Both the position numbers and the translations under genes were made by a program. 64,000 nt of DNA from assembly GCA_965153285.1 (NCBI GenBank), contig OZ229111.1; one strand, written 5' to 3'. The notes under the pieces were generated by a model. It did not search any database. It was given only the letters and a program-made list of their open reading frames with translations, and was not told the origin of the DNA. This DNA is from Podarcis tiliguerta (lineage: Eukaryota). Below, piece by piece: positions 1 to 50,200 of the stretch (positions are counted from its first letter, which is position 1; each line of letters starts with the position of its first letter).

Positions 1-87
1 TTATCAATTGCAATGTCGGTTATAAGCTTTTTTCTTAGCACCATTTTGAATCTGAAAATGCCCCAAATTTCCTGGAAGAGAACCGAG
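1..87 (+). CDS. AprA-like copy 1, partial exon (LSIAMSV...ISWKRTE)
   Basis: Open frame 1 ending GAG|gtgagg, phase 0. Confidence 0.7.
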
Positions 88-3000
88 GTGAGGAAAACTC
101 ATGTTGCAACATAACTAATTCAGTCATGAGACTTGTTTTATTATTTACTTCAAGCCATGGGTACACATAGCCTTTTAACTGATGAAAATCATAGTTTATC
201 AAGGACACTCTGTTAAGCTCAAGCTTACTAGGAAATTATCAGTATTATTGGAAGCAGGAAGCCTTGGCCAATGATCCAATAAATGACAGGAACATTATGA
301 CATTTGGCCATTTTCTGAGGGCACTTGGTTGGTTTTGAGCTTTACTGGTACATATTAGAATATTATGACATTTCCTTCTGGCCTTTTAATGTTACATTCA
401 GATACAGTAAATATTTAAATAGGCTCTATTAGTATATGTATATGAATATGCCCCTAGAGGCAAAACACAAAGAAAGGTTCTTAATTTCAATGAAATTGAA
501 AGGTTCTTAATTTCAATGAAAGCTGTAGGTTGATTTCACACAGACTGTTTCCTGACACATGTTTCTATACTAGCCAGCTAATTAGGTGGCTGCTGTTGAA
601 ATGAGATCTTTGCAATCTACGTAGGAAGAACCATTGCACAGTGGTACTTGCTTTGCATGCTGAAGATCTTTGGTTTGATCCCTGATGTTTCCACATAGGC
701 CTGGGAGAGAAACCTGCTTGTAATCACCCTAGACAGCTGTTGCCAATCAGTGTAGACAAAACTGAGGTAGATGGACCCAACGGTCTAACTCCGTATAAGG
801 CAGCTGTTAAGTTGTGGGTGAACATATCAGACGACACAGCGATTCTTCCAAGCAGCTCTTTATTTGTAAGCTGGAACAGAACTGAGCTGAGGAGCTTAGT
901 CAGCCTGCTTATATAGAGCTCCAGTACCTTGTTACTGTAACAACTTTCTAAAACTATCCAATCACTGAACGTCACTTTCGATCCTTCATTTGCATACAGT
1001 ATCCCCCTGCTGGCCCAGGGTGAGAACTTCAGTACATAACAGCAGCTTCCTATACAAAACTTTCATGTAGCTGATAGAAGAAATGGATGATAGCTTGAGG
1101 AACGCTTGATATTTCTGTCCTATTCTCTCTTTTTCTAGACAAAAGCTACAGGTATTATCGAGCTCTACACAGATATGGAGCCTTCAGCAGTTAAATGTTT
1201 CTTTTCTAACACTTTGGGCTCTGAAAGGTAGGATTTATCGTGTATGATTTATTAATACAAATATACAGAGTTGATATAAATATACATACAAAGAATGGGA
1301 CAATCTCAGTTGTCTCTTTCTTAAATTCAGTTCTCCACATTTCTGCTGCATTTTGCAAATTACTGTTTTTTAAAAAATCCTCTGGAAAAATAGCCAGCAT
1401 TTTTGTGTGCTTTTCTCTTAATCTCCACATTTATGTATGTCGTTTTGTCAAATATACATATTTTTGCAAACAATTCCCCCTAGTGCTTTTTTGTTTCTTA
1501 TTTTCACTAACCTATGCATTTATATACGCACTTCACCCTAGTATTTCTGTGCACATTACTTGGCTTGAGAGCTGCACTGCAAACTTCGTAGACATGTGAA
1601 TTTTGAAGGATGTCTGTGTTTTGGTTTCCACATTATTTTTGAAAGTGTGACAATGGAGGTTCACTTTTAAATCTCTACAAAGAAGCCATTGGGGTGTTCC
1701 CTTCCCTAAAGCATGCAGTATTTTCTCTCTGGCAAAAAAGAAGAAGAAAGCATTCTGAGTGCTTTTTGTGTCTGTGAACAGCTCCACAAAACATTACAGT
1801 TTTTATACTTTTATATGTTTTCAAACCTACAAACAAGATTCATAAGGGAACTTTGTGGGTGGATTACTGAATATGCTCTAGAACTTTTGGAGTCAGGTTG
1901 ATGGTATTGAAGAACCATCAGAATGCCTGAGTCAACTGAGTAGTAGACAAAGAGTATTTTTAATTGCTTAAACATAACGATCCCTTTTGCTTCAGTAAGT
2001 GAACTATTGCCTTGGCAGTGGTAAAGGTAAAGGTACTCCTGACCGTTAGGTCCAGTCGCGAATGACTCTGGGGTTGCAGCGTTCATCTCACTCTGGAGTC
2101 CGAGGGAGGCGGCGTTTGTCCGCAGACAACTTCTGGGTCATGTGGCCAGCATGACTAAGCCGCTTCTGGCGAACCAGAGCAGCGCACGGAAATGCCATTT
2201 ACCTTCCCGCTGGAGTGGTACCTATTTATCTACTTGCACTTTTACGTGTTTTCAAACTGCTAGGTGGGCAGGAGCTGGGACTAAACAATGGGAGCTCACT
2301 CCATCGCGGGGATTCAAACTGCTGACCTTCTGATCGGCAAGTACCACTGCCAAGTACCACTGAGCCACCTTGGCAGTGGTACTTGTCTCCAAAAAGTAGC
2401 TTCCTCAGCACTCACTGTGCCGCCTCCTTCCCTTCTCATTCTCAGGCGAGACTTCAGGCTGTTGGTGGGTCCTGGTCCTTCAGGTGTTTCACAACCCATA
2501 TCTTGGCTTCCCTGCAAGGTTGAGAAAGTGGTAAGAGGATTTGGGATTGGGGGTTTCTCCAAGCTTCATAACACAGTTGAGTGAATCAAGCCTCCATCCC
2601 TACGCACACAAGCAGTTCTTCAAAAATAAATTATTTCCTTTAAAGATGGTTTCTGTTGCCAACTCATTGAATTAGCCCATTTATTTGCAAAGTTCTTTCT
2701 TTTTTAATTACATAGTTAGTGTACTCAGTTAGGATAGTGGTTGGTGTGTGTGTGACATGCACCGACTGGTTACCATTTGTGATGGGCTGCACAGGAAAGT
2801 CCATTGCTGTTGCTTCCATCTTAAAGGAGCAGAAGTTCATATGTAACAATAAGGCCCACTCTGGAACCTGCTGGGTTCCTTCAGAAGAAAGGGGTATACA
2901 CTGAATGAATAAATAATCCAAGAGTCAAACAACCAAATAAAATGGGATTCTTTCGTTATATAAGTTACCAAAAACATCCATAGGATGGTTTCATTTCAAA

Positions 3001-5496
3001 GCGCAGCAGAGTGTATTTCCATCTAATGTTGCCCCAGGAGGTGTGAGCTAAAGAGCATTATCTTTATGCTGTAGTTCTAAAAAGACCCATGCTAGAAAGT
3101 AAGACTCACTAATATATTGGGGCTCATGAGTCTATAGCAGGGGTAGGGAACCTCTTTCGGAATGAGGGCTGCATTTCCTTCTGGGCAAGCATGTGGAGGC
3201 TGCATACCAGTGATGGGCAGTGTCAAAGGCAAAAGTGAACAGAGCAATCAATGTGAATTCTACCATTGTGCAGTAGCCTAGTTTCTTCACAGTCACACTT
3301 CTTTCTCTATCCTCCATCCAGGCAAGCAAGAAGTATTATCAGAGTCCAAGGACACATTCCAGCCAGGGGGAAACAGTCTAGGAGGGAGGAAAGCACAGCT
3401 GGTGAGGGTTGTGGTTTGGAAGTGTGGGTGTCCTGGAGATTATCACAAGGGCCAGATAGAGAGGTCTGGAGGGCTGCCCTTGGCCCCTGGGCCTGAGGTT
3501 CCCCATCTGTGATGTATGGAATGGTTTATGATCACCTGGAAAGAAGTGGGATGTAACCCCATCCCATTCTGCCCCACTTTGAGCACAGTCGCCATAGCTG
3601 TTCCACTCTACCCTGTCCTTCGGAGACTCAAACCAGGAACACTCTTCTCCAGATTCACACTAGTGAACATTTTAGAATTTCATAAGCTCAGGGTTTACAA
3701 GAGCGCCTGTTACCTGTTCATTTCTCAGTGGCTTCGGTCTCATCCCATTGCAGAAAACGGGTGTTTATAAGGCAGAAGAGGAGAAGCCACAATCAGGATG
3801 GAAGGCTTTCTTTATTGAGGTAATTATTCACTCTAGTATTTGACTCCCCCACCCCCAGGAGAGAAAACTCTGAGTGCATTGAGTACCAAGACTGATAGAG
3901 ATTCACCCAAATCAGTCTCCCTGGAAATAACAGGCACTTTTAGGAGGGTCATGTATTGGCATTAGCACTGAGATGCTAAGCCAGAAGAAATCAAGATAGG
4001 TTGTTAGACGACGTTTCTCAGAACACACAATGGCTCTGGAGTGTCTATCCTATTCCAGTGTCAAATCTTCATCAACACCTAAAAATCAGGGCTACAAAGT
4101 TTAAGTTTTCCATAAAACGTGTTCTGGGCAAATTATGGCTTGAATAAAGCACTCCTAAATCAGAGTGGTTGACAGGTAGGAACTATGAGCTGGAAATTGC
4201 TGTTCCATGTTGCAGTCCAGGCATTAATTCATTGGCTGCTGTAATCGCGCCATGATATTTCTTAGGGCTATGTGAAGCAACCCAAGCTGCTTCACTTCTG
4301 ACTGTCCCCTATTCAGTTTGAATTGCTTCAGGAAGGGGGTGATATTGCACCCCAAATCCAAAGCTGCAGCTTCAGACCTCCCATTGACTTGCATTGGGAA
4401 AGCAAAATATTCACAAATTTTGGAATAGTTACATAGGTGCATAACACCTGCTGACATAGAAGGTCCACCTCTCCAAAAATAGGATGAACCCTGCCAAATT
4501 TGAGACACATAGGTCGTGTGACTTTTCTAATAATAATAATAATCCAGAACAGTCATAACTTATTTGTAAAAGATTTTGAAAATAAAATGCAAAACCTATC
4601 CCAGAAAACACTATGGCCAGGGGACAACACACAATATGTATATATGCTTGTGTGCATAGATGTATGTATATATAATTTTGGATTGGGAAGGATGGAAAAG
4701 AATAGAAAACAAACATATAGTTTGGTTATGAAGGATCTATGACTCATTGAGAGATGATACAAGTGTAAATAAAATGCAGAACACCATAGTCACATTTGGG
4801 AGAAGAAGGAAGTAAAACTGCCTTAGTGGCTATTATAACTGGAGACTAATATTGACAACAAGCTCTATGTGTGTGTGTAGATAGAGAAGGGTGAAAAAAG
4901 CAAATAGGTAGAAATGTTGGGTTAAGAGACAAGCTGAATCAAAATACCACAGCAAACTCCTTGTGCCATTCATAGTACTAGCCATAGAGTGAGGGGGAAA
5001 GGCACTGGGACAAAGATACTAGGATTGTGGGGATGTAGGATAATATTCTACGTCTGGGTTGAGGCTACGGGGAGCAAATACCAGTTCTACTACTCCCATT
5101 GACTCCATTATCGTGTTTCCCTTATTTGGGGATGTTTACATTTTCCCAATCATTTTGGAGACAGCTTACTTGGCTCAGATCATCTTTGCTTTGTAACTGA
5201 ATGTTTCCAGAGCAGGGGAATCTTCTGCTCAGATCGCTTTGGGGGCAGAGCTGAGCCTTGGAGGCACCCTATTTTGATCCTGCCTCATCTTGGGATTTGG
5301 ATGAAGGGGTTGCACAACCCTAGCTGTTAAAACAATTTGGGGGGATATTGCATCATGTGAACTACTTCCTTGCGTTTAATGAGGTAATATTGGCTTTGTA
5401 ACCAATAATCTAAAAGACTCAAGGCAAAAACTGGTATTACCCAAATTGCCAAACAGAGTGGCTGGGGAAACCCAACCAGATGGGCGGGGTATAAAA

Positions 5497-5544
<48 letters not shown>

Positions 5545-5981
5545 TATATATTATTAGCTTACCTTTCAGTCTAGTTCCCTCACTGTGTCCTTCCAAAAAC
5601 AATAAAGCAACTATGCCTGAAAGCTCTACTTTCATGTACTAATTGAAATCCAGTGATAGAAAGCTGTTGTGCTGAATAGGCAGGAAGTATTCTTCCATAA
5701 ACTACAATATGCTGTAAGGCACAACAATTATTTTTTAGCTATCCCTGTGCTTTGCACTCCCAATGTAGGCTCCGTTCTATTAGATTTGCAAAGTGAGCTA
5801 TTGAGCAGAACTGCAATTTCTTTTCCAGGCCACCTTCCCAGGACCTGGGACCATTGATTTTGTGTTAAGTTCTGAAGTTCACATCATTCCAGACACTTTT
5901 CCATGTCCAGCTGCCACGGAAAGGAATGCAAGGGGAAGGTGGTATGACACTCACCAAGGATGCTACAGCTCCTGCTGCTGA
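1..5981 (+). CDS. AprA-like / PqaA-family (PhoPQ-related, alpha/beta-hydrolase-like) gene, copy 1; last five coding exons, 5' part outside the window
   Basis: Exons <1-87, 1139-1227, 2446-2530, 3754-3819 and 5829-5981 all have GT-AG sites and compatible phases. Spliced product: LSIAMSVISFFLSTILNLKMPQISWKRTE|TKATGIIELYTDMEPSAVKCFFSNTLGSER|RDFRLLVGPGPSGVSQPISWLPCKVEKV|KTGVYKAEEEKPQSGWKAFFIE|ATFPGPGTIDFVLSSEVHIIPDTFPCP... The motifs RRDFR, GWxAFFIExTFPGP and IIPDTFP are typical of the AprA/PqaA C-terminal region (recalled). Confidence 0.78.
623..806 (+). mobile_element. Squam3-like tRNA-derived SINE
   Basis: Degenerate tRNA head and characteristic 3' part cagtgtagacaa...gatggaccc..ggtct..ctc..tataaggcagct. 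Confidence 0.6.
1139..1227 (+). CDS. AprA-like copy 1 exon (TKATGIIELYTD...GSE-R)
   Basis: Pyrimidine tract + ttctag| acceptor and AG|gtagga donor; 89 nt, phase 0 to 2. Confidence 0.78.
2021..2340 (-). mobile_element. Sauria SINE (Squam1), 5'-truncated
   Basis: (ACCTTT)n tail read as ggtaaaggtaaagg; body similar to 47789-48146; TSD ccttggcagtggta at 2010-2023 and 2368-2381. Confidence 0.85.
2446..2530 (+). CDS. AprA-like copy 1 exon (R-RDFRLLVG...VEKV)
   Basis: ttctcag| acceptor and GTG|gtaaga donor; 85 nt, phase 2 to 0. Confidence 0.8.
3138..3509. mobile_element. hAT-like non-autonomous DNA transposon
   Basis: Imperfect TIRs caggggtagggaacct ... aggttccccatctg. Confidence 0.5.
3754..3819 (+). 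CDS. AprA-like copy 1 exon (KTGVYKAEEEKPQSGWKAFFIE)
   Basis: ttgcag| acceptor and GAG|gtaatt donor; 66 nt, same length as the paralogous exon 12464-12529. Confidence 0.8.
5454..5545 (+). repeat. LINE (L2-type) 3' tail with (ATT)n microsatellite
   Basis: cagagtggctggggaaaccc...gatgggcggggtataaa followed by about 15 ATT units. Confidence 0.6.
5829..5981 (+). CDS. AprA-like copy 1 terminal coding exon, with a 1-nt frameshift near 5910
   Basis: ttttccag| acceptor. In-frame reading gives ATFPGP...PDTFPCPAATERNARGRWYDTHQGCYSSCC*. The shifted frame gives CHGKECKGKVV* (stop 5945-5947), which matches copy 2's CNGEECHRKLV*. Confidence 0.75.
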   Translation, partial: ATFPGPGTIDFVLSSEVHIIPDTFPCPAATERNARGRWYDTHQGCYSSCC

Positions 5982-7199
5982 AGGCATCCATGAGTGTAAA
6001 CACGAGAGGTGCTCAGAAAACCATGCAGAGGAGTCAGGGTGGGTTGGGCAGAGAAATAATACTGCATAGAGAATGCACAGGTTCAACTTCAACTAACATG
6101 AAATGGCAGAGGGGTGTGGGGTCGTGGGGTAGGTAGGTGAAGATGTCAGTCAGGAACAGGAGCCCTAAAGGAGGATTGTGGGAAATGGGTCTGGTGGGTG
6201 AATGAAGCATATTGGGCATGAGACAGAGGGAGGGCCTGGTTATATAAAATTATGAACGATTAATGCAGCAAAGGAAAGTGCCTTTGTATTCCTCAGATCT
6301 CAGGATCAAAAGAAAGGGAAGCACTATGCTCTATAAGTCTTCACTGAAACTCTGTACAAGTATTTGAGCATTTGATGCACAATTCCTTAACCCGGATTTA
6401 GCCTCGTAGACTTTGATGGGATTAAATAGCCTCTAATCCAAGTAACTGATTATAGCTGGATTGTAAATCATGTAAAATGACTGAGTTCAAATTGCACGTG
6501 AGTCACAGACGGAAGTGGGTGTCTTCTTTGGCTAGCTATTATCTCTTCGTTTTCAAGTCCCTTCTGCAAAATGGGGGTAACAATAAAGTGACTATATTTT
6601 GTGTGGCAGAAGTGAGCCCACCTGCTGTGGCTTTCATGGCCTCATGATTTCTAGCTGTTCATTCCCTGTTAACAAATAAAGGTTGTTTCTGGCATTCTTA
6701 CCATCTTGCACTGGGTGAGATTTTCTTGTGTTTTGAAGTGAACCGCCACTTGCTCCACTATCCTCCTATAGCTACTGTATGGGAAATGGGTGTCTGTTCT
6801 TAGGGTGTGTAGCAGGTTGGGTCATAAGCCTATCATAACAAAAGGAGTAATACCTACCATAGTACTATCAGTGTTGTGAATATATGTCATTCAGTTGAAC
6901 ATATTAGGTTTGTTAGTAAAGTGGATCTACTGTTCTTCATACAGGCAGTTGTAGTGACTGAAGTACAAACCACCAGGGAGTTCTCTTGTAAAAGCCCATT
7001 AAAATGAAATAGGCGCACCACTGCCCTCTGCTGCTGCTCTTAATCATGGCAAAGGCATTTATGCAGGTCAGCTGCCCAGTGTGTTTGTGCTAAACAGAAT
7101 TCCAAGCAAAGAGACTGGAAGCTCATTTTGACTACATAATCTTAGAAGATGGTGTGGCTGTGAGAGCGCATGGCTGTGACTATCATGGAAGGACCCTGC

Positions 7200-7465
7200 A
7201 CTTCGGAATTTGGCACTAAGCTAGTGCCGCTACTCAAACTGCATGGGATGAGGTTCCAAAGGGGCAGCAGATGCGGGAGCATGTGAATTCCATGCTGGAA
7301 TTCGTGGAGCAGTTGAGAACAGGGGAGGAACTGAAAGACAATAATTCTCCAGCCCTATTGCTGCACAGCCTTGCAGAATCATACAGGGCCCTGAGTGGTG
7401 CTACACAATGGAAGGAAACTGGTGTCATGACCCCTGAAACCCTCCAACACCGCAAGGGCTTATAA
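7200..7465 (+). mobile_element. Degenerate Ty1/Copia gag (UBN2-type) fragment
   Basis: Frameshifted KLVPLLKLHGMRF/GQQMREHVNSMLEFVEQLRTGEELKDNNSPALLLHSLAESYRAL resembles Copia gag and the equivalent segment of the intact element (HLKFL...VLSSLDDSYDML). Confidence 0.6.
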
Positions 7466-7899
7466 GGAGTTCTCTACAAGTGGGTGGAGCTGGGAGGAAC
7501 AAGTCATTCGCTTAGTGCTATCCATGAGCCAGCTTCCAGGCTTGCTTTCCCTGTAGAATTCAGCATCAGACCTGAGCAGGACAGGACTTTCTCCGTCTCT
7601 CATAACTCTAGAATTCGTGGATGTTCAATGAAGCTGACTGTTAGAAGATTCAGGACAGATAACACCTTTCTGACTGCTATTCCTGCTGCAGCTATCTCCT
7701 GCTAGGACTCATGGAAAACCTATCAGACAGACAGCAAAAATTATCATCTATGCCTGGTTGACAGTGTTATACGATTTTGTCTGTTTGCATGCACACACAT
7801 GCAAGCAGCAGGTTTCAACAGTTCATAATGCCTTGCATTGAGATTATACACACCGCACCCATGCAAGACAATACACCTCTCTTACTAACTCAGTTTATC

Positions 7900-8600
7900 T
7901 GGGAGTTGTTGGCATCCATCTGTTTCGAAAGACAATGGGATGCTCCTTCAGGGGCGAAGTCAAACTGCTGCACTAGCAGGATCAATGTGATCTTCTCAGG
8001 GCACAAGCCTGGGCAGTGTGTATGGAGGTCCTGGGCTGCCCAGATGACAAGACTCTCAGCCTTGTTGATGTAAGTTCAAAGGAAAGCAGAGTGATACATT
8101 TGGCACCAGCTTGGATGTAGGAGTTGCTGGAAAGAGGCAAACAAGGCATCATACAACTGTCTTAGGGACTCCACTCTGGATTTATGTAGGGTTTACTCCT
8201 TACCCTTTTCTTTTCCCAAAGATGTTCTGCAAGGCAGTGGAGGTTTAGGGTCAGACTGTTCCTTCTCCTAGGTGGGCTACCTTCCCGGGTTGATGAGCCC
8301 CATCTGCCCCTCACTTCCGTCTATGGCACTTGCAGAAACCGCCTTCTTCACCATTGGACCCCCTGTTGGTCTCATCCACTCAATCCACCACAGCCTGTCT
8401 TCGCCTGCCAGGGAAATCCCTAACTCACTGAGGGTTTGAGACCAATCTGATACCCTCATCTGGTTTAGCTGGACTGTCTGAGCCGTTTCCAGGATGTGGT
8501 GGCTGTTGCATGCTGATAGTTTCTAAGAGCCACAGGGGACCAAAGGTGGACAAACTACCCCAGAAGGAGCATGACCCCACCAGAGGCACTACCTTCTGAG
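7900..8600 (-). mobile_element. Probable RTE-clade derived retroelement fragment
   Basis: Starts with ttggcatccatctgtttcgaaagacaatgg, resembling the reverse complement of an RTE-type 3' end (recalled); no intact ORF. Confidence 0.4.
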
Positions 8601-9622
8601 TTGGCAATGGTTACGACTACAGTACTTTCAAAACAGTTCCTCCTGTTTGCATTATCTGGCTGGCTGTTTTTCCTAGTGCCCCTGTACCTGACTAGCTCTG
8701 CCCCTCCCAATCATCTTTTGCCTAGCAAGATGTTCTCCTCCTCTCTTTCCCCTCAGGTGGAGACCAAACCCATTACAAAAGGGCATTTGCTTCTGCATTG
8801 CTTCAGGCAGTGGCAGGAATGCAAAAGGGAAGGGACAGGGTGATGTTTGCCAGCATGTGCCACCTTTTTCTCCCTCCACTTCAGTCTAGGCCTGAACCCA
8901 TCCTTTAGGTATAGCAGAGCATGTGTCGGCTTCAATTTGACCATGTGCTGGGAGGATGCTTTGGCCACTGAATAACAACTGGCACATTTCCATCTGCATA
9001 ATGGCTGCCCGGACCATGTGGTTCAGTGCCTTCCATGCTCAGTGACCTTTATAAGTACAGGTATTTGTGCTGATATTCTTTTTCAAGAAGCATGAATTAC
9101 TTTCATAGCCTTTGCAGAACTGATACTAATGACTTAAGTACTTTTACTTTACTTTGTCTCTGAAGTTGTGTAGCTCTTTTGAGGCAAATCCCAAACTAGT
9201 CAATCACCTACCATGTGAATACCCTTGAATCTTTTCCATGTCTGGATCTTGACAAATTCTCTTCTTCTAATACACTCTGATGAGGAAAGTGTTTACTTTC
9301 TCACGTCAAAATCTAGTGGTAATCTGGAGTTTGTTTGAAAACCATGCTTTATAACAACATCTAAATTTCATGGTCCATGAAGAAGTGGACATTGCTTTCA
9401 CAAAAGTGCTTTAATACTAGAATTAAAATACAGATGCCAAATCATGTAGTTACCTTAGAGAGAAACTGGGAGCTGCCATAAGCTGTTCCCCATCTTCTTA
9501 CATTTGGAGCCCCGGGCTCTCACCTGTTCCCTGTTCAAACAATCCCAGCATGCACCTTATCAGGATGTCTGTTCCTGCGCTCTCTTAAATGTTGTGTTGC
9601 TTGTGCCTCTCTGGTGACTCAT

Positions 9623-9790
9623 CAAATTGTAATTGTTGGTTCTGAGAGCAATGAGTTCAAAGATGTGTGTAGATCAAAAAAGTGCAGAGCTTTTTAATAT
9701 ATGTGGAATTTTTAAACATTCATATTAAAAAGCTCTGATTTATACACATCTTTGAGCTAAATTGCTCTCAGCGCTGATGATTACAATTTG
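9623..9790. repeat. About 170-bp imperfect palindrome (MITE-like hairpin)
   Basis: Nested inverted arms: caaattgtaat/attacaatttg, ctgagagcaat/attgctctcag, tcaaagatgtgt/acacatctttga, cagagctttttaatat/atattaaaaagctctg. Confidence 0.8.
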
Positions 9791-11031
9791 TTATTTGAGA
9801 ACTCTGTGCTTTGGAAACTCCCTAGGCAGAAAATATGCCCTACTTTTATTACAAAGCTGTGCCTTTTCAAGCTTAATTATTTAAATATCCTTCAAATGCA
9901 TTATTTTCATTTGCTTTAATGCTATGCACAGAGAACAATGTGCTAGCATATGCCCTCAAGCACCTGCCCTGTAAGACAACATTACTTGTTGCTTTACCAA
10001 ATTAAAAATATGAATCTCGCTTTTGACACACCAACCACCAATAACAGAGCTAAGTAAGCAAGTGCCTTGGCTTTCCAAACAGGCATTATTTTTACAGGCC
10101 CTCAAGCCAGTGGTTCTATAAATTGTATTGTTTCCCCCTCCCTCTCCCAAGAAGAATATTTGTATCTCACTTTTAGTATACTATTGATCCTTGTCCTGTC
10201 CAGCAGAATCACTCAGCGTGCAGAACTGAACAAATGCTTTGCCATGCCTAGGTAACAGCTAGTGGGAGAGACTTTTGCATAATTGACCTTGAGATGATAT
10301 CTGGGGCCAGCTGAGCTGAGGAGACACAATCTCCAGCCTCTCTCTCTGCTCAGGTCTGACTAAGCCAGCAGAGGGAGCATTTGCTCTTTCTGCCCTGCTG
10401 CGGGCCTTTATTTTTCAGTGCAATGGAGGCTTCGGCCTGGTCCACAGTGCTCTTGGCAATGTCTGTGGGCAACCTTTTGCAGCTGAATCGACCCCTCACA
10501 TTTTAAATTTGTTTTATACCCCTTCACATATGTCTTGCAGTTTCTTTCTGCATCAGCTCTGTGAACTCTGAGGTTATTTGGGGGGGGGGTGGAATTGTGT
10601 GGGTTTGCTTCCCCCACAGCTTTTTTCTGCTCCCATAGCCCACCCAGTGCTGGGAGTGACCAGAGCCCCTTTAAGCGGGGCTATTTGTGTAAGATACTTT
10701 GATGTGGTTGCCATCTAGTGGTTCCTAAAGGCAAAAGTTGAGGAAAATATTGGCACTGAGCATGCAGGGGAGTGGTTCTAATGTGGGTATCTGGCTAAAG
10801 GTTGTACAGTATAATAGTAACCAAGTAGGGCAACCAGTTACTGTTCATCTTACAGGTTTAGCCCGTATACATTATAAACCAGGCATTTATCACCTTTATC
10901 TCCTCATGGTTTAGAAGTGTGTGGGTCGCCCTGGTATTTCTGCTTTCTCCCTTTTTTGTCTTGGGGATACAGTGGTATATGGAAGATGGTTTTAAGGACA
11001 CGGTTTTTCTGCACCATCTATCTCTTTCTAG

Positions 11032-13742
11032 AAAATACCACAGGCATCAATTACTTCTTCACAGATCAAGAGCCCTTCTGTACCAAACGTTATGTTGCTA
11101 CCACTTTGAGCTCTACAGGGGAGGATTATTTCAGCAATTTTGAGTAATTGAAGGTACTTGTTTTTAAACAAGCAGTTTCCTCAATGATTACTAAGTCACA
11201 TCTTTCTGTTCCCATTCTCAGGTGAGACTTCAGGATAATTCAGCTGGCCCCTGGTGGGATAGCGGGTCTTATACTATGGTTGCCACTTGAGAAAGTGTTA
11301 AGTGGACTGGAGATTTTAGAGCATTCTTCACACTGCGGAGGAAGTCAAAGCTGTTTCTGCACAAGCGGTACGTGTTAATTTTTCTCACACTTGCTACATT
11401 TTCCTCCGAGCTGTGCTTCTGTTGTAGAAACACTGGATTGACCCAGCAGTCAGCCTGCAAAATACATTTCTTCCCGCAGGTACCATGCTCATTTGCTGTT
11501 AAGATTGCTGTGTGGCCTAACAGTGTCAACCAACCACTGGTTACTTTTTGTGAAGTGAAGAGTAGGGTCAGAGGAGCATATTGCTGCTTCTCTGTCATGG
11601 ATGAGCAGAAGGGCAGATGGAGGACCTAGTCAAGATATCGGGAGAAGGAACATCTCTATTCGGCTGTTTTATGTCAAATTGTGTGAGGCAAGAAATTGGG
11701 GCTACACATTCACTCTGCACTGCTATCCACAGTGGGGGCATTCTCTAAACCTAAGGCTGCCCCATGAGATGGTTCCTGCTTGCATTTGCAAGATTCCCCC
11801 CCTGCAAAAGTGCTCCTAAATTTGCAGGCAGTGTCGGGAAGGGCCTGCTTAGGGCAAGATGGTGGAGATGGTGCAAGTAGTTGGAATGGAAATCAGGTCT
11901 TGGCAATAGAAGAAGAGGAGTTTGGATTTGATATCCCACTTTATCACTACCTGAAGGAGTCTCAAAGCGGCTAACAAACTCCTTTCCCTTCCTCTCCCAC
12001 AACAAACACCCTGTGAGGTGAGTGGGGCTGAGAGACTTCAGAGAAATGTGACTAGCCACCCAAGGTCACCCAGCAGCTGCATGTGGAGGAGTGGAGACGC
12101 GAACCCAGTTCCCCAGATTACGAATCTACCGCTCTTAACCACTATGTCTCTCTGTATAAGTCCCCCCCCCCCCCCAGCTCTACTTCTCCAGATCCATGGC
12201 TGGTCCTATTATTAGACAGAATGAGGCAACTGCTTGGGAGGAGGGGAGCCCCACTTCCAATACTATTCCCATGGAGCCTCCTAACCAGCCCCATCGCCTT
12301 GAGCTTGCAAGGGAGTGTCCCGAAAGAAGGTATGGCTGGAACATTCAATAGGAGCATACCATAGTTCAAGATTTTGCTGCAAGTCACACTAGTTCATACT
12401 ATTAAACCTTCATAATCTTGAGTTTAGAAGCAGAGCAAGTTAGCTGTGCACTTCCCTTTGCAGGAAGCAGGAATTTACAAAGTGGAAGTGGACAAACTAT
12501 CAGAGAGAGGGAAAGGCTTCTTTATGGAGGTAAAACGCCTTGCTCCACTGAGACTATTTCACACACAGCAAAATCGGGGTGCATTGGCCACTGAAATGTA
12601 TCACATTCAGGAATTATATTGTTACAGGCCACCCCAATCTCTGTCAAGCAGTAGCAAGAGATTCCTGGGTTTATGTTCCTTTGGAATGAGGCACAATAAG
12701 AGACTAGTGTCTTTAAGAAATATGGTTTATTTTATACATGTTTACAGCTGAAGCCTTCAGTGGTGGGGGTGCAGAACAACACATCCCAAGTCTATCTCTC
12801 GTTGCTCCTCTTGTCAGCAGCTTGGATCCAAAGCAGCAGCCAGTCATGCTTCTCGGTGCAGCCTTTTCCAGCCAGCACACTTCAGAGCTCCACCCACTTC
12901 TTGCTCCTCCTTCCCAGAAAACCCTGTTCCCCAAACCTCTGTGGTGACATCACACCCCTGTTTCTCTGGCAATCTCCCCCTCTCAATTCTGCTAAGTAAC
13001 ACACAGCTGGAGGAGGAACTCCACCCCTTTCCATGTCTGACTGAATATCTGACCTTTCATCAGGGTATTAATGATTCTGCCTTTGTTCTTTGAAGTCAAG
13101 TCAGCTTCCTGGGGGATTGGCTTAGAGAGGTGCTTAACAAACCCCACATAGATAAATTTTAAAAATTATGGAGAACCTGGCACTGGGAGTGATGTAGATT
13201 GGGGAAAAACTGTAGTTCACTGGTAGAGCATCAGCTTTGCATGCAGAAGCTCCTAAATTCAATCACCAGCATCTCCGGGGAGGTTGGAAATGCATGTGAA
13301 TTACTTTCAAATCACCATGTAATTTCCAATCTAAGACATTTTCAGGCCTTCCATCAGATATCTAGACAATTTAGGGCAAAACCTGGTGCAGTAAAAGGCA
13401 GCAAATATTTTTCTTGTTTTCAAACTAGCTCAATCTAATGTCCTTTTGAGGGAGCGGTAATGAAAAATAACAGCTTCCTAAAAATAATATAGCATTAAGA
13501 GGCACCTAACTGCATAAAATATTCTGCCATTAGGCACCACTACTGAAAAATGCAATCATTGTTGCTTGGATATCTTCGTGCTGCCCATTTTTCACTCTTT
13601 GTAAGACTAATTGCAATTTCTTTTCCAGGTCACCTTCCTGGGACCCCTGGGCACAATAACTACATATTCACCCCAGATCCTCCCAGACACATTTTTCTGT
13701 GCAGACTGCAACGGAGAGGAATGCCATAGGAAGCTGGTTTGA
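11032..13742 (+). pseudogene. AprA-like / PqaA-family paralogue, copy 2 (pseudogene)
   Basis: Exon relics: 11032-11119 (1 nt short, donor GT>GG); 11222-11297 (CGA>TGA at 11223-11225, donor GT>TT); 12464-12529 (EAGIYKVEVDKLSERGKGFFME); 13629-13742 (VTFLGPLG...PDTFFCADCNGEECHRKLV*). Colinear with copy 1, with shared intronic and 3'UTR similarity. Confidence 0.8.
11915..12145 (-). mobile_element. tRNA-derived CORE/L2-tailed SINE (Squam2-like)
   Basis: Reverse strand reads tagtggttaagagcggtaga...gggttcgcgtctcc...gggtgaccttggg...ctcacctcacaggg...gggatatcaaatccaaactc. Confidence 0.7.
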
Positions 13743-14454
13743 AACCAACAAGGGATACTGTGGCTCCTGCTGCTGAAATCATCCATGACGGAAGAATAAG
13801 AGGCACTGAGAAGACCATACACAGGACCAGGTTGGCAGAGAAAGAACCTTGTGTGGAGAGAGTGTTAGACAAACTAAATTGGTTTGGTGGTGGGGATATG
13901 ATGTCACAAGCTGGAGAAGGATGCTAATCAGGAGCCCTGAAAGAGGACTAGATAAGAGAAGAAGTGCAAATGGTAGTGGAGAACAACTAGGGACTCATTC
14001 TACAGTATTTTCAGAAGCAACAGTGATGCCATGTATATCGGCCTAAAGCATGGCTTAGCTTGGAAGCAAACTCCCAGTGTTCTTAAGGGGGCACTGCAAA
14101 AGGAGGGGACAAGTTATTAAGGCACCCTTAAAGACTTCTCTGGCTAAAATAAATTATCTGGGACAGAGGGTTCATTGTTTCCTTTAATCTGCACCTCCCC
14201 CTGACCCCAAAGCACCCACCCTTCCTCCTTACTCCCCTAAAAGCTGAAATGGCAGCATTGGAAGATGCCCTCCCCATACTACAGTGCCAGAAGGCCCAAG
14301 CACCACTGCTCTTTCAGTCCTGATGTGGTACTGAGAGCATCTAGAAAGAGCCCTTCCTCCACTTACTGCTACCACTGCCATAAAAGGAAATGAGAAGAAT
14401 CCTCTTTCCCGCCCATAGAGGCCAGGCAGGGACCATATATCCAAAGCAAGGGAC

Positions 14455-14873: not shown

Positions 14874-17800
14874 ATGGAGCAGTCCAGAAGTGGCGTGTTG
14901 CTGGAGAAGCTGACGGCCACAAACTACAGCATCTGGTCGGTCCGCATGCAACACTTCCTCAAGCGTGAGGGCCTGTGGAAGGTGGTGGAAACTCCACAGC
15001 AGCCCCATGAGGAGGATGAGGACGACGATGAAAAGCTGGCACTAACAGAGGTCCAGCTAGAAAAGGATGAGAAAGCTTTGGCTACGATCATCCTTGGAGT
15101 GGACGACAGCCAGCTAGTCTACGTAGCTGACAAGGTGACGGCAAGTGAGGCGTGGAATGCACTCAAGGCTGTCCATGTGCGAGAGACAGCTGGCTCACTG
15201 ATAACATTGACCAGGAGACTGTACCGGTGTTGGAAGAAACCGGGGGACTCCCTGGTAAACCACCTAAAATTCCTAACAGGCTGTTTTCAGGAGTTAGCCT
15301 TAAGAGGGAGGCCTGTGGGGGAAGAGGACAAAGTCTTTATAGTCCTGAGTTCCCTTGATGACAGCTATGATATGCTGGTCAACTCCCTCGAGTCGGTAGA
15401 GACTGATAAGCTGACTCTGGAATACGTTACTGGACGGTTGTATGCAGAGGAGGACAGGCGTGCAGAGCGAACGATGACCTCAGCCCAGCTGTTGGAGCAT
15501 CCCAGAGGGAACAACAGCCGGGAAGAGCAGAGGTGTCGGGAGCCGGAGAAACAGCCAGGAGGAGCTGCTGCAGACCAGCCGGTGGTCAACAAAGTAAAAA
15601 GGTGTTCTTGCTGCAAGTCCAGTGGCCATCTGCTGCGGGACTGCCCAAGAAAACAACAAAAACAGCAGAAGCACAGGAGGCAGCAGAGAGAGTCTACCGC
15701 TTGGGTGTCTGCAGATGGTCAAGAAAATGAAGAGCTGTGGGTTCTGGACAGTGGAGCTTCTCAAACCTTTTGTAAAAGAAAAGGATTGCTAACTGATGCT
15801 AGGGCTTCAAACAAAAAACATGTAAGTCTTGCTACGGGCCAGAAAGCTAATGTGGTTTGTGAGGGGGAGGTTGTGTTCCCACAGCTGGGACACACATTCA
15901 GGAATGTGTTGTGTGTGCCTAGTTTGCAAAACAATCTCCTGAGCATTCCTGACTTGGCAAAAGCAGGCTTTGAAGTAAACTTTGTGGGAGATCAGTGCCA
16001 GATAAAGCAAAATGGGGCAGTGTTGGCAAATGCTAACCTTAGAACTAATATGTATGTACTGCAGTGTGAGTCTAAGGTTGCGAATGTGCAAAATGTCCCA
16101 ACCCATGATATGTGTATTCATCTCCTGCACAGGCGTCTGGCTCATGCTAGCTATAAGGTGCTAAACAAAACATTGGAGTTGTGCGGGGGGATGAAAAACA
16201 TTAAAAGTTGTGATAATTACTTAGACTGTAATATCTGCAAGGAGGTTAAAAGCAGGGCTTGCCCAGTAGCAAGAGCAAGCCAGAGAGAAACCAAAAAACC
16301 ACTGGAGTTGATTCATGCTGATGTAACTGGTCCTTTTCCACCAAGTGTCTCCCATAACAAGTACTGTTTGATCCTAGTGGATGACTATTCTAGATTTGGC
16401 TGGGTCTATCCATTAAAGCAAAAGTCTGACGTTGCCCAAACTTTGAAGTTCTGGGTAAGAAGGGTAGAAAGGCAACTTGGCGAAAAGGTGTGCTCCATTC
16501 AGTCAGACAGGGGAGGAGAGTTTATGGCAAACTCCCTAAGAAACTGGTTGCGTTCCCAAGGGATTAAACATAGACTTACCAATGTGGCAACGCCTCAGGA
16601 GAACGGAGTAGCAGAGCGTAGGGGAGGTGTCTTGCAGACACAAATGAAAGCATTGTTAGCAGATGCAAATCTTCCAATTAAGTACTGGGCTGAGAGTATT
16701 AAGACCGCAAATTATATTGGGAATCGCTTGTGGTCAAGGGTACTAGATGACATACCCTATAAAATTCTCTATAACAAAAGTCCCAGTTTGCAACATTTGA
16801 GAATCTTTGGGACAAAGGCGTGGGTTGACATACCTGTAAAGAACCGAAGAGAAGGTGGGAAAAGGGCACAGCAGTTGCTATTTCTTGGGTATGAAAGTGG
16901 TACAAAAGCCTACAGGTTTGAAGATGATAAAAATCTTTTGAGTTATAGTCGGTCAGCCAGCTTTAATGAGCAAAGAAATTGGCCCAAGATACATGCAAAC
17001 CTGCTGCCAGAAAAAGTTTTACTGCCGAGCATACCTGATAAGGCAGTTGAAACAAAGCTAAGAATTGGCAGCTCTCCCAGAGAAACTGAAAGGGAGGAGG
17101 TAAAGACTGAAGATTTTTCTCCAGCTGCTAGCATGGAGCAGGGGAGAGAAGAAAGTGCAACAGGGACAGGAGGAGGTAAATCTCCAGAATCAATCCACCC
17201 CAAAAGCAGTCCTGAAGGTAGCCCAGGGGGTGAGATTAATGAACCAAGGAGGTCTGCAAGAAGTAATAAAGGTCAACCTCCAGACCGTTATGGGTTCCCA
17301 GCCACCATAAACCAGGTTTGTGTAACTGAGCCAGAAAACTTTGAAGAAGTGCAAGAGTTACCTACTCTAGAGAAAGAGGCGTGGTTAAAGGCAATGCAGG
17401 CAGAGTATAACTCTCTGCTAAACAACAGTGTGTTTGTACCTGCAGAATTGCCTGAAGGTAAAAAGCCCATAAGCTGTAAGTGGGTTTTTAAAGTGAAAAA
17501 GCTGGCTGATGGTAGTTATCAGAGGAAAGCCAGGTTGGTTGCAAGGGGCTTTACACAAAGAAAAATGATACATTATGATGAAGTGTTTGCCCCAACAGCA
17601 AAGGCTGAAACAGTAAAATCAGTTTTAGCAATGGCAAGCCTGAGAGGGTTAAAAGTTAATCATTTTGATGTTGCCTCAGCATATTTAAATGCTCCTATCG
17701 ACGCCGAGGTGTATTTACAGCAAATACCAGGTTATGAGCTGGAGAAAGACAGCATGGTGTTAAAGCTGCAAAGGGCACTATACAGGTTGCACCAAAGTGC

Positions 17801-18866
17801 ACGTCTATGGCATGAATGCATAGACACAACTTTGAAAAAGATGGGATTCAAACAAAGCCTGGCTGATTCCTGTTTATATTCAGCAATGGTGCAAGGAAGT
17901 GTTTGTTATTTACTTTTGTATGTTGATGATATCTGTCTAATAACAACTGCACAAAAGCAAGTGTCTTGGTTTATAAACAGCCTAGGTAACAAATACAAAC
18001 TGAAGTATTTGGGAGAGATTCAGAATTACTTAGGAGTAGAGGTTCAGAGAAATGAAGAGGGCGTCTACTCTCTGAGTCAGAAGGAAAAAATCGAAAAGTT
18101 ACTGAAGACATATGGAATGGAGAGGGCAAATGAGGTTGACACTCCCATAACTACCCAGTACAAAAATGAACCAGAAGGGCAAAAATGTGAGAATGCAACA
18201 GCGTTTCATTCTCTGTTGGGTTCCCTGTTATATTTAAGTTGTTGGACAAGACCCGACATAACATTGGCAGTGCACATGTTAAGCCAAAGAAGTGCAGACC
18301 CGGCTCAGAGAGATTGGGTAGCACTTAAAAGAATCCTAAGGTATCTGAAAGGCACAAAAGATTACAAACTGGTGCTGGATACAGGATATGATCAGCAAGT
18401 GTATGCATACACTGATGCCAGCTGGGGGGACAGAGAAAATGGAAAGTCTACCACTGGCTATGCCATATATATTGGAAATGCCCTGGTTCAGTGGAAATCC
18501 CAGAAACAAACATTTGTTGCCACAAGTACTTGTGAAGCAGAGTACTCAGCCATAAGCGAATGTGTGTCACAAATAGAGTGGTTTGCTTGTCTAACAAAAG
18601 AGCTTGGAATACCTTCTGAAATGCCAATCACTGTGCTAAGTGACAACATGGCTGCACAACAGCTTGCTAACCAACAGAACTTTAAGAGCAAGAGTAAACA
18701 TATAGCGATAAGATACGGAAATGTGAAAAATGCTTTGGAAAGAAATGTGTTAAAGGTACAGCACTGTAACACAAAATGTAATGTGGCAGATTTGTATACA
18801 AAATGTTTGGATGCTCCTAAATTTCGAGACTTAAGAGAATTATTAGGTCTCAAGCCTTTGACTTAA
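14874..18866 (+). CDS. Copia gag-pol polyprotein, 1330 aa
   Basis: Gag; Zn knuckle CSCCKSSGHLLRDC; protease WVLDSGAS; integrase HRRLAH..CxxC, HADVTGP, SDRGGEF, NGVAERR; RT CKWVFK, KARLVARGF, YVDD; RNase H YTDASW, EAEY, SDN, ADLYTK. Confidence 0.97.
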   Translation: MEQSRSGVLLEKLTATNYSIWSVRMQHFLKREGLWKVVETPQQPHEEDEDDDEKLALTEVQLEKDEKALATIILGVDDSQLVYVADKVTASEAWNALKAVHVRETAGSLITLTRRLYRCWKKPGDSLVNHLKFLTGCFQELALRGRPVGEEDKVFIVLSSLDDSYDMLVNSLESVETDKLTLEYVTGRLYAEEDRRAERTMTSAQLLEHPRGNNSREEQRCREPEKQPGGAAADQPVVNKVKRCSCCKSSGHLLRDCPRKQQKQQKHRRQQRESTAWVSADGQENEELWVLDSGASQTFCKRKGLLTDARASNKKHVSLATGQKANVVCEGEVVFPQLGHTFRNVLCVPSLQNNLLSIPDLAKAGFEVNFVGDQCQIKQNGAVLANANLRTNMYVLQCESKVANVQNVPTHDMCIHLLHRRLAHASYKVLNKTLELCGGMKNIKSCDNYLDCNICKEVKSRACPVARASQRETKKPLELIHADVTGPFPPSVSHNKYCLILVDDYSRFGWVYPLKQKSDVAQTLKFWVRRVERQLGEKVCSIQSDRGGEFMANSLRNWLRSQGIKHRLTNVATPQENGVAERRGGVLQTQMKALLADANLPIKYWAESIKTANYIGNRLWSRVLDDIPYKILYNKSPSLQHLRIFGTKAWVDIPVKNRREGGKRAQQLLFLGYESGTKAYRFEDDKNLLSYSRSASFNEQRNWPKIHANLLPEKVLLPSIPDKAVETKLRIGSSPRETEREEVKTEDFSPAASMEQGREESATGTGGGKSPESIHPKSSPEGSPGGEINEPRRSARSNKGQPPDRYGFPATINQVCVTEPENFEEVQELPTLEKEAWLKAMQAEYNSLLNNSVFVPAELPEGKKPISCKWVFKVKKLADGSYQRKARLVARGFTQRKMIHYDEVFAPTAKAETVKSVLAMASLRGLKVNHFDVASAYLNAPIDAEVYLQQIPGYELEKDSMVLKLQRALYRLHQSARLWHECIDTTLKKMGFKQSLADSCLYSAMVQGSVCYLLLYVDDICLITTAQKQVSWFINSLGNKYKLKYLGEIQNYLGVEVQRNEEGVYSLSQKEKIEKLLKTYGMERANEVDTPITTQYKNEPEGQKCENATAFHSLLGSLLYLSCWTRPDITLAVHMLSQRSADPAQRDWVALKRILRYLKGTKDYKLVLDTGYDQQVYAYTDASWGDRENGKSTTGYAIYIGNALVQWKSQKQTFVATSTCEAEYSAISECVSQIEWFACLTKELGIPSEMPITVLSDNMAAQQLANQQNFKSKSKHIAIRYGNVKNALERNVLKVQHCNTKCNVADLYTKCLDAPKFRDLRELLGLKPLT

Positions 18867-22613: not shown

Positions 22614-22692
22614 CTAATGTCTCTTGGTGGAGGAGACCTTCTTCTTGCGTGCAGCAAGCATCTCGTAGAATGGATCCCGGCTAATTGCAGCT
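22614..22692 (-). CDS. CYTH1: CYTH1 last coding exon ([11 protein letters not shown]...TKRH*)
   Basis: 79 coding nt ending TAG. Confidence 0.95.
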
Positions 22693-47200: not shown

Positions 47201-50200
47201 GACAACATTATTTCCTCGCCTTGCATTCTGCCTTAATGAGAGATGCCTTCTCTGAAGTTTTGGGCAAGTTTTCTGCTGATCAGACATCCAATCTGCTTTT
47301 GTGGTAGCGACTTGTTAAATGTGCTACATAGCCAGGCATTTTATCATTCCCATTCTTAATTATACCAGGTGGTTTCCCTAGTACTTGTGAAAATCTTTGT
47401 AATTCATTAACACTTTATAGGTGTTCTCTTTCAAAGCCCTGACTGCCCAGCAGCACAACTGCTCTTCTCCGTGCCGGAAGGGGACCAGTGTACCATCATC
47501 ATCCACTGCCTGTTTGAAGGAAAAGATGCTCCTCCACAACATCATCCCTTTCTTCTTAATCCTCACAATCCCCCTTGTCTTAGCAGGGCATGTTGAATTT
47601 TTCAAGTTTCAGGTGGAGATGCTAAAAAGTTGTAACATGACTTGGGAATTCAAAACATATTTTGGTTAAATTGATATAATTTAGTTCTGCTTGGTAAGTA
47701 AATGCATGTAACGTTGCGTAAAAATCATTAAAATTGCCAAGTAGTAATATTAATATCAATACTATTATACAATATTTATTATTATTAAGGGACGCGGGTG
47801 GCGCTGTGGGTTAAAGCCTCAGTGCCTAGGGCTTGCCGATCGAAAGGTCGGCAGTTCGAATCCCCGCGGCGGGGTGCGCTCCCGTTGTTCGGTCCCAGCG
47901 CCTGCCAACCTAGCAGTTCGAAAGCACCCTCGGGTGCAAGTAGATAAATAGGGACCGCTTACTAGTGGGAAGGTAAACGGCGTTTCCGTGTGCGGCTCTG
48001 GCTCGCCAGAGCAGCGATGTCACGCTGGCCACGTGACCCGGAAGTGTCTTTGGACAGCGCTGGCCCCCGGCCTCTTGAGTGAGATGGGCGCACAACCCTA
48101 GAGTCTGTCAAGACTGGCCCATACGGGCAGGGGCACCTTTACCTTTTATTATTATTAAGCATTACCTAATATTTCTATAAGGTAAAATTAAAATTATTTG
48201 GTTTTCCAAAAGCAGTTTATGTGCTTCTTCATCAAATGTAGACTTAACAAGCTAAATGTTGCCCAATCACAAAAATAGTAGATTTGAATTCCTCATACAC
48301 AAAACCATATTTTTAAGGAAACCCCCCCCCCCGAAATTTTCAGAAATTAAGTTTAACCCCCTCAAATCACACACCCTAATGTTGCTTATGAGAGTCTACA
48401 AGCATATGGATTGAAATGGGGGGTGAATTTTCAGAGGGGGCATTGACTTTTTAGAGGAGGTTGAGAACTAAGGGGAAAGACCCTTCATCCCAGCTAAATG
48501 TGGGTTCAGCTGTGTGGCATTTTAGTGGTTATTTTTTTTAATTTCACATTCATGGCCACTTCATTATATTTATAGCTATAGTCACATGCTTATTTTCTTG
48601 TGATTTTGCATAGCTTCTGCTAATCTTTTCAGAAGCCTCTTGTGAATGTGATATGTAGTTCCATACCTTTGACTGATGTACTCATTCATTCAGAAAATCA
48701 GGCGGAATATAGCATTATATTTAGTGATAGAAAAGCAACAACAACATGTTGTTGCTGGAGTTGCTGTGTTTGAAAAGTTGCCAAATATTAATTCCTATTC
48801 TGTTCATTCTAGGAAACACAGCACCAAAGTAAGGTTGAAAGTCACATTTTTCAAAATAGAGAACGACAGCACTGCATCTGGAAAATTGATTTTGGGGCGG
48901 AGCATTCAGGGTTGGTGTTTATGCCCCCCAAAAGATTTAGAATGCTGTGCTAAACTCTTCAGATTCTAATTGCAAGAAAATAACTTCCATACACTTTGAT
49001 ACTTGCCCATGTGTTTTCAAATTCAGTACTTTCCTGCAGCTTAGTGAGCTAGAAAGCCAACCCTACAGAGTTCCACTTTGAGAAAGCCCCATTAGAATTC
49101 AGCACTGGCAGTCCCATTAGATTTGTTCCACTTTTCCATTTTCTCCTCCATTTCAGACCAAACTCTCTGGAGCAGCAGTGGAGAAGCAATGATGTGTGAC
49201 TGGCTGGGTCCAAAGGGAGTTGCAGTCCAGCAACATCTGGAGAGTCACCATTTCCCCATCCTTCCTCTAGAGGAGCTTCTTCAAGCAAGGTCTGAGAGCT
49301 CAGGGGTTCTTCTGCCACATCCCTCACTTTTATGCCACCTCTTCTAAGGCCTGGTTTGGTGCATCTAAGGTAGCACTTCCTTCAGGCTCTCCCAGCACAA
49401 GCTTCCCTAGCAGATGCGAAATCTCCATTATCCTAAGCTCACAGCAACAGCACAGACTTATGCAAGTGTGCTCAGAAGTACTGCAAAGTTCAGTAAGTCT
49501 TACTCCCCAGCAAATGGGTATGGAGTACCTCAGTGGAGCAATTTCTCAAAAGGCCTCTCCTCCTCCTAAATGCCCTAAGAGCAAACTGTCCCAAGATGCA
49601 ATGCATTCAGATTATGTTCCCAAGATCGGTTCCACCCTGTTGTGACACCAGACCTACGGAACATACAAGTGTCTTCTGCTTCTGGCATTGCTTGAACCTC
49701 TTTCCTAATCCTAGTTGCAGATTCAAGTTCTGAACCCTAAAAGGTTTTTTTTTGTTCCTTTGATTTCTCCCATGAAGCCCTGGACTGGAATCTGAAATCT
49801 CTTCAACGTAATCCGGGAAGTTTAAAAACCACAGACACTCCTGGTGCCGCATCTTCATAACAAGCACTTCTCTCCCCACTGCCCCCTTGCATACACAAGT
49901 GCATACCTCCCCACAAACCTTGAAAACAAGGTTTGATTCATCCCACTCCCCAAATCACGGCTACATAAATACAACTTAGCTAACAAGATATGACAGCGTC
50001 TTCAAGAACCAGTGTCCTTGTCAGTGACACTTTGTCATTCCACTGATGCATGGCAAGATCCACAAGGCAGCCCACAACAGCAGGCAACAATGGAGAACAA
50101 GCAAGAGGAACATGTGGCCAATTCCACAGAGCAGTGTTGTGGCTGCCTCTTTAAACTCAGCACATGGCAAGCCATTTGTATCCTGCAGCTCATCACAGAA

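Follow-up and report, generated by a model that had tools for sequence, protein, structure and literature searches.

The 3′ third of a probable PqaA/AprA-family gene and its decayed partial duplicate, convergent with CYTH1, in a lizard genome

To our knowledge, AprA of Dictyostelium discoideum is the only eukaryotic member of the protein family PF10142 (MEROPS S82) that has been studied, and research on AprA reportedly led to the work on DPPIV as a neutrophil repellent. AprA is a secreted proliferation repressor and chemorepellent and belongs to this Pfam family by database naming (PMC6406579, PMC11878206), while the family as a whole has been described as ‘barely characterized’ (PMC11878206). 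GrlH-dependent chemorepulsion and a DPPIV-like peptidase activity are among its reported activities (PMC5821085, PMC8326840). Human DPPIV has been reported to resemble AprA in structure and function and to repel neutrophils (PMC8326840); by sequence it is unrelated to the PF10142 family, and the relation is one of analogy only. In bacteria the family is represented by PqaA and its relatives. Here we describe a stretch of 64,000 nucleotides from Podarcis tiliguerta (assembly GCA_965153285.1, contig OZ229111.1), which was analysed at its whole length, contains 0 runs of N and is called the window in the following. Its + strand from 1 to 13,850 very probably carries, as judged from the sequence, the 3′ third of a lizard PqaA/AprA gene followed by a dead partial duplicate, and both are convergent with CYTH1.

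The assignment to the family runs through a protein of another lizard. The last exon of the downstream copy (exon D′, see below) was searched against 1.84 billion protein representatives and matched P0003, a protein of 206 amino acids (aa), with 56% identity over its last 41 residues (E 5.9e-4). Of the three matches, the other two were discarded as low-complexity or repeat noise: P0001, which is an SdrD-like repeat protein, and P0002, which is ApoL. P0003 carries the automatic NCBI annotation ‘autocrine proliferation repressor protein A-like [Podarcis muralis]’; this name is derived from AprA, and the likeness to the Dictyostelium protein is by naming only. P0003 matches the PF10142 profile (PhoPQ_related) with 56.5 bits (cut-off 20.3, E 2.4e-15) at profile positions 267-367 of 367, and its nearest ESM Atlas clusters are PF10142 as well. 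The model is partial, starting mid-domain at profile position 267, and it was the sole lizard relative found in protein collections; the P. muralis locus, too, may be incomplete or in decay. Over residues 17-192, P0003 shows 25-33% identity to bacterial members of the family: 33% to the PqaA-family protein of Sinorhizobium meliloti (S. meliloti; WP_088195337.1; E 1e-19 by tblastn and 1e-26 in pairwise alignment) and 25-27% to those of Ralstonia (ARS58395.1), E. coli and Salmonella (plasmid-borne, WP_020833669.1). A word search with P0003 returned only P0003 itself, the length rule of that search leaving out full-length relatives; a scan of genome contigs with P0003 gave no match, and a PDB sequence search gave no solved relative.

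P0003 was then compared by tblastn with all six frames of the whole window; here and throughout, searches and comparisons were made exon by exon, with each exon taken singly. Five colinear matches were obtained in the upstream copy (copy 1, positions 1-5981, + strand). Its five colinear exons, E0, A, B, C and D, were delimited by a stop-to-stop scan and base-level reading, and they align to the C-terminal 145 residues of P0003:

1-87, + strand: exon E0, cut by the window start, reading ..SFFLSTILNLKMPQISWKRTE; donor GT 88-89; matches P0003 residues 62-89 with 50% identity (tblastn E 1.3e-6, pairwise E 5e-11)
1139-1227, + strand: exon A, TKATGIIELYTDMEPSAVKCFFSNTLGSE + 2 nt; acceptor AG 1137-1138, donor GT 1228-1229; matches P0003 residues 90-118 (tblastn E 8e-6)
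2446-2530, + strand: exon B, (R)RDFRLLVGPGPSGVSQPISWLPCKVEKV, containing R/RDFR; acceptor AG 2444-2445, donor GT 2531-2532; matches P0003 from residue 120 onward (tblastn E 0.09)
3754-3819, + strand: exon C, KTGVYKAEEEKPQSGWKAFFIE, containing GWKAFFIE; matches P0003 residues 147-168 with 77% identity (tblastn E 6e-6)
5829-5981, + strand: exon D, the last exon, ATFPGPGTIDFVLSSEVHIIPDTFPC (ATFPGP...IIPDTFPC), followed by a frameshift; stop 5979-5981; matches P0003 (tblastn E 1.5e-6)

All four introns of copy 1 are of the GT-AG type, with eight of eight splice sites canonical and matching phases, and no stop lies inside the five exons. The codon split over the A/B junction yields R, followed by RDFR, and the phase of B joins that of A. 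GWKAFFIE closes exon C and ATFPGP opens exon D. In the downstream copy (copy 2), P0003 gave colinear matches to exons A′ (E 1e-3), C′ (E 0.06) and D′ (E 7e-8). The exon blocks of both copies in this search are far beyond chance. P. muralis P0003 and copy 1 agree in their exon-encoded blocks and in the order of these, at 41-77% identity per exon, and have the motifs MPQISWKR, ATGII, RDFR, GWK.FFIE and IIPDTFPC in common; the two differ in the Cys-rich tail, which in P0003 is of the copy 2 type and in frame and in copy 1 is frameshifted. As overall identity is only ~55%, P0003 is taken as either a distant orthologue or a paralogue.

Bacterial sequences lead to the same exons. For the S. meliloti protein, exon C is the top tblastn match in the whole window (48% identity), and E0 aligns to residues ~333-362. 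A profile built from three bacterial proteins only ranked exon C first of 2165 open reading frame (ORF) pieces (E 0.0033) and puts E0 at the expected profile positions. Against Pfam, the nine single-exon pieces did not match PF10142 at E up to 10, these pieces being only 22-50 coding residues long and too short to be decisive; the PF10142 model itself covers no more than E0, A and the very start of B (positions ~310-367). The bacterial proteins carry GGRSKRGW/GASKRGW, VPNT(D)H, ARDFR and GW.A.(F/Y).E.T(F/Y). P0003 retains ATGDE and PNTNH, the counterparts of STGDQ and PNTDH in bacteria. The C-terminal module, A-RDFR and then G-W-x-A-x-(F/Y)-x-E-x-T-(F/Y), is present in copy 1 as RRDFRL, GWKAFFIE and ATF and aligns with its counterparts in S. 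meliloti, Ralstonia and Salmonella. RDFR, GW.A.F.E and PD..P are motifs common to the family from bacteria through lizards. On these alignments we assign the exons to the PF10142/PqaA/AprA (MEROPS S82, alpha/beta-hydrolase-like) family. An earlier note on this DNA had proposed this family; P0003 and the bacterial PqaA-family proteins bear the proposal out, and the family motifs it had named, the GxSKRGW elbow included, are present in the bacterial sequences and are thus family-wide.

In bacterial PqaA-family proteins, RDFR, GW.A.(F/Y).E.T(F/Y) and the C-terminal blocks align with exons B, C and D. Unlike the lizard genes, the bacterial genes are intronless and without the C.DC.GE.C..KLV tail. 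Their enzyme-defining parts, GxSKRGW and VPN..H, fall outside the stretch that aligns to the window exons. Exons E0-D correspond to residues ~333-455 of the S. meliloti protein, which is 470 aa long, and this means that the window carries only the last third of the gene; according to the alignment with P0003 and the bacterial proteins, the window starts ~10 residues past the His block. The visible exons encode the closing part of the hydrolase domain together with the conserved C-terminal module (RDFR ... GW.A.F.E ... PD..P), to which lizards add a Cys-rich tail. From the alignment with bacterial proteins of the family, one expects the signal peptide, the nucleophile elbow GxSKRGW, the Asp and the His in the 5′ two thirds to the left of the window, and the full copy 1 protein would be a secreted serine hydrolase. 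The activities of Dictyostelium AprA belong to AprA; its animal homologues are known here from sequence alone. The surroundings of two bacterial genes were also seen: a second alpha/beta-hydrolase gene comes after the PqaA-family gene of a Salmonella IncC plasmid, and the PqaA-family gene of a Ralstonia megaplasmid adjoins a type III effector gene (L003:677-3109 and L002:653-3710 for the two loci).

Copy 2 lies ~5 kb downstream of copy 1 on the + strand (11032-13742) and comprises counterparts of the last four exons only. The position of B′ was set by comparing the two copies and not by the P0003 search:

11032-11119, + strand: exon A′, ..NTTGINYFFTDQEPFCTKRYVATTLSST; one base lost right after the acceptor; donor position 11120-11121 is GG
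11222-11297, + strand: exon B′; TGA 11223-11225 replaces the Arg codon of copy 1; 9 nt shorter than B; donor position 11298-11299 is TT
12464-12529, + strand: exon C′, EAGIYKVEVDKLSERGKGFFME; splice sites intact; GW motif without the family-wide Trp
13629-13742, + strand: exon D′, the last exon, VTFLGPLGTITTYSPQILPDTFFCADCNGEECHRKLV followed by the stop; ORF intact, ancestral Cys-rich tail kept

Owing to the base loss after the A′ acceptor, the homologous frame is out of phase 0 at entry. The motifs of the module read stop-DFR, RGKGFFME, VTFLGP and ILPDTFFCADCNGEEC in copy 2, with a stop ahead of DFR and the Trp gone. The in-frame TGA, the two lost GT donors, the shifted entry frame, the 9-nt loss and the lost Trp mark copy 2 as a dead, truncated pseudogene. 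Counterparts of E0 or earlier exons were not found in 6.2-11 kb by tblastn with P0003 residues 1-89 and with the S. meliloti protein at full length. The latter search gave weak look-alikes at 809-865 and 11001-11078, which were dropped as upstream exons for lying out of order or within a high-copy repeat, or for being exon A′ itself.

Between the copies, blastn aligns DNA at 70-74% identity across the exons, their immediate flanks and ~95 bases beyond the stop; the introns are no longer alignable, and in tblastx the copies are colinear over four blocks. With P0003 as reference in a relative-rate comparison, copy 2 alone changed at 24 sites and copy 1 alone at 11 (p 0.04). The ratio of non-synonymous to synonymous divergence (dN/dS) between the copies, computed per exon and summed, is 0.44 over 108 codons with a dS of ~0.9. 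This divergence points to an old duplication, and some constraint may have acted on copy 2 prior to its decay. The pair probably arose when a segment was duplicated in tandem and one of the two copies then decayed, a case of birth and death. The ~95 bases past the ancestral stop (5947-6042 and 13742-13835) are ~70% conserved between the copies, equal to the coding exons, and may represent a 3′ untranslated region element.

Copy 1 has a lesion of its own. Measured against copy 2 as well as P0003, exon D lacks one base between 5910 and 5911, 13 codons ahead of the ancestral stop. Past this gap, 24 unrelated residues follow in the open frame up to the stop at 5979-5981, in place of the C.DC.GE.C..K.V tail. 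The ancestral frame is still legible at 5912-5947 as CHGKECKGKVV-stop, close to CNGEECHRKLV-stop in copy 2 and CKGEGCYGKLV in P. muralis, and for this reason the frameshift looks young. The gap is no artefact of assembly, as contigs of the runs X1 and X2, from two other samples that differ from the window elsewhere, span 5557-6000 with 0 gaps relative to the window. The runs X4 and X6 (related organisms B and C) each have one gap somewhere within 5557-6000, its exact place being unlisted. Since bacterial members do without such a tail, the Cys tail may be dispensable.

Several expectations of the earlier note can be judged from the two copies. It had placed two colinear sets of exons on the + strand, which the exon models, splice sites and tblastn matches recover, and it had let GWKAFFIE/ATFPGP cross an exon junction, which base-level reading places between C and D. 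Its motif string RRDFR...C.G.EC is present in parts; as a whole it is a composite that neither copy encodes in one frame, and the C.G.EC part of copy 1 occurs only in the other frame, at 5912-5947, past the one-base gap. A tandem array of working genes, as the note had it, is not what the window holds: there are only the 3′ third of one gene, with a frameshifted tail, and a pseudogene fragment confined to 3′ exons. The suggested birth-and-death pattern is visible at the locus in the decay of copy 2.

The exon structure, the homology, the lesions and the neighbourhood are direct observations, and several explanations of them can be weighed. That the coding-like blocks arose as open frames by chance or from repeats, and are not gene exons, is effectively refuted. 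Single exons without a Pfam match and the high-copy repeats that make up parts of the region would fit such an origin, but the five P0003 matches are ordered, mostly at about E 1e-6 to a PF10142 protein, and flanked by canonical splice sites; moreover the exons sit in single-copy depth bins or single-copy contig pieces and carry motifs in common with bacterial family members. In another scenario A′-D′ would be a present or former alternative 3′ exon cassette, spliced from E0 instead of A-D. A cassette would account for the duplication of the last four exons only; it is in line with the failure to detect upstream exons of copy 2 in 6.2-11 kb, with the finding that only exons and immediate flanks are alignable between the copies, and with the dN/dS of 0.44, which suggests partial past constraint on copy 2. 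However, A′-D′ cannot yield protein here, given the shifted entry frame, the TGA in B′ and the donors GG and TT, and we consider a cassette very improbable.

A more serious alternative is that the whole locus is decaying, with copy 1 being a pseudogene too by way of its C-terminal frameshift and perhaps of lesions left of the window, which would leave no working gene here. The one-base gap at 5910/5911 deletes the conserved C.DC.GE.C tail, the frameshift is found in two further samples as well, the relative in P. muralis is annotated merely as a 206-aa C-terminal fragment, and a search for runs that contain this stretch turned up none of RNA, the six that do contain it looking like DNA contigs. 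Against this, the five visible exons are stop-free with eight canonical splice sites and matching phases, copy 1 is closer to the P. muralis protein than copy 2 is (24 vs 11 residues), the family-wide motifs are intact in copy 1 with the Trp included, and the Cys tail may be non-essential, as bacterial members are wholly without it. We regard a locus without any working gene as possible, though the less probable outcome. For copy 1 taken by itself, the sequence inclines us modestly towards a gene that still works, with a gene disabled only very recently as the second, clearly sizeable possibility.

The reading we prefer, a gene end accompanied by a dead duplicate, has a number of points against it. 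No single exon matches PF10142 directly, and membership is a transitive link plus one weak direct match. Splicing and expression of the exons are deduced from the nucleotide sequence. The frameshift in copy 1 takes out three conserved Cys, and given this loss copy 1 too could be dead. Only one vertebrate homologue is at hand, the conservation of the tail being judged from three sequences, and the partial state of P0003 hints that such loci may be decaying in other lizards too.

A full-text literature search found no paper on vertebrate members of the family, and animal AprA-like proteins were mentioned only for sea cucumber and clam; vertebrate PF10142 members are known only from automatic annotation. 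The lizard gene is a new member of a known, little-studied family, and the locus an ordinary gene-plus-pseudogene pair. Taken alone, the 3′ end of a gene and a pseudogene fragment are ordinary genome content. The locus shows that a lizard carries an AprA/PqaA-like gene beside CYTH1, with copies being lost, and it offers a concrete start for a survey of synteny and loss across tetrapods. It is conceivable, if rather unlikely, that squamates retain a working AprA/PqaA S82 hydrolase that is absent in mammals: a secreted, peptidase-type chemorepellent or growth regulator, which would be the true sequence counterpart of Dictyostelium AprA, in a role thought to be filled by DPPIV in mammals. If so, the locus flanking CYTH1 would be a record of how this gene is still being duplicated and lost.

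CYTH1 lies on the - strand with its stop at ~22.6 kb and is convergent with the AprA-like copies. Its exons were located by a motif scan of the six-frame translation and the ORF list; the name CYTH1 is a lead from such motifs, with long exact stretches of peptide as its only confirmation. The earlier note had put the AprA-like copies immediately 3′ of CYTH1, and this holds apart from a Copia insertion. The insertion shows as a Copia-type ORF and is not part of the AprA-like gene family. It lies between the AprA-like pair, whose nearer member is the pseudogene, and the 3′ end of CYTH1, the pair and CYTH1 standing tail to tail:

14874-18866, + strand: Copia-type gag-pol ORF of 1330 aa, uninterrupted, with gag, protease, integrase and reverse transcriptase (RT)
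22614-22690, - strand: last coding exon of CYTH1
~23.6, 24.6, 26.0, 33.6-33.9, 34.9-35.0, 36.6 and 37.4 kb, - strand: further CYTH1 exons

Some further elements lie within and between the copies. The intron of copy 1 between A and B contains a high-copy interspersed repeat at 2023-2341, with a 79% identical inverted copy ~46 kb away at 47832-48146. The contig word depth of the repeat at 2023-2341 is ~10^5 times that of its flanks in all four runs. It is probably a short interspersed element, and no tRNA was found in it by ARAGORN. The repeat is in part the reason why this intron is longer than its counterpart in copy 2. A second repeat of very high depth occupies 800-1200, directly upstream of exon A; an ORF at 686-913 in this repeat has a weak, out-of-order likeness to the bacterial STGDQYF block, which was taken as chance. 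In the last intron of copy 1, contigs from all runs end at an (ATT)19 microsatellite (5497-5556). The spacer between the copies holds a palindrome-like inverted repeat of ~170 bases at 9623-9790, which is 71% identical to its own reverse complement.

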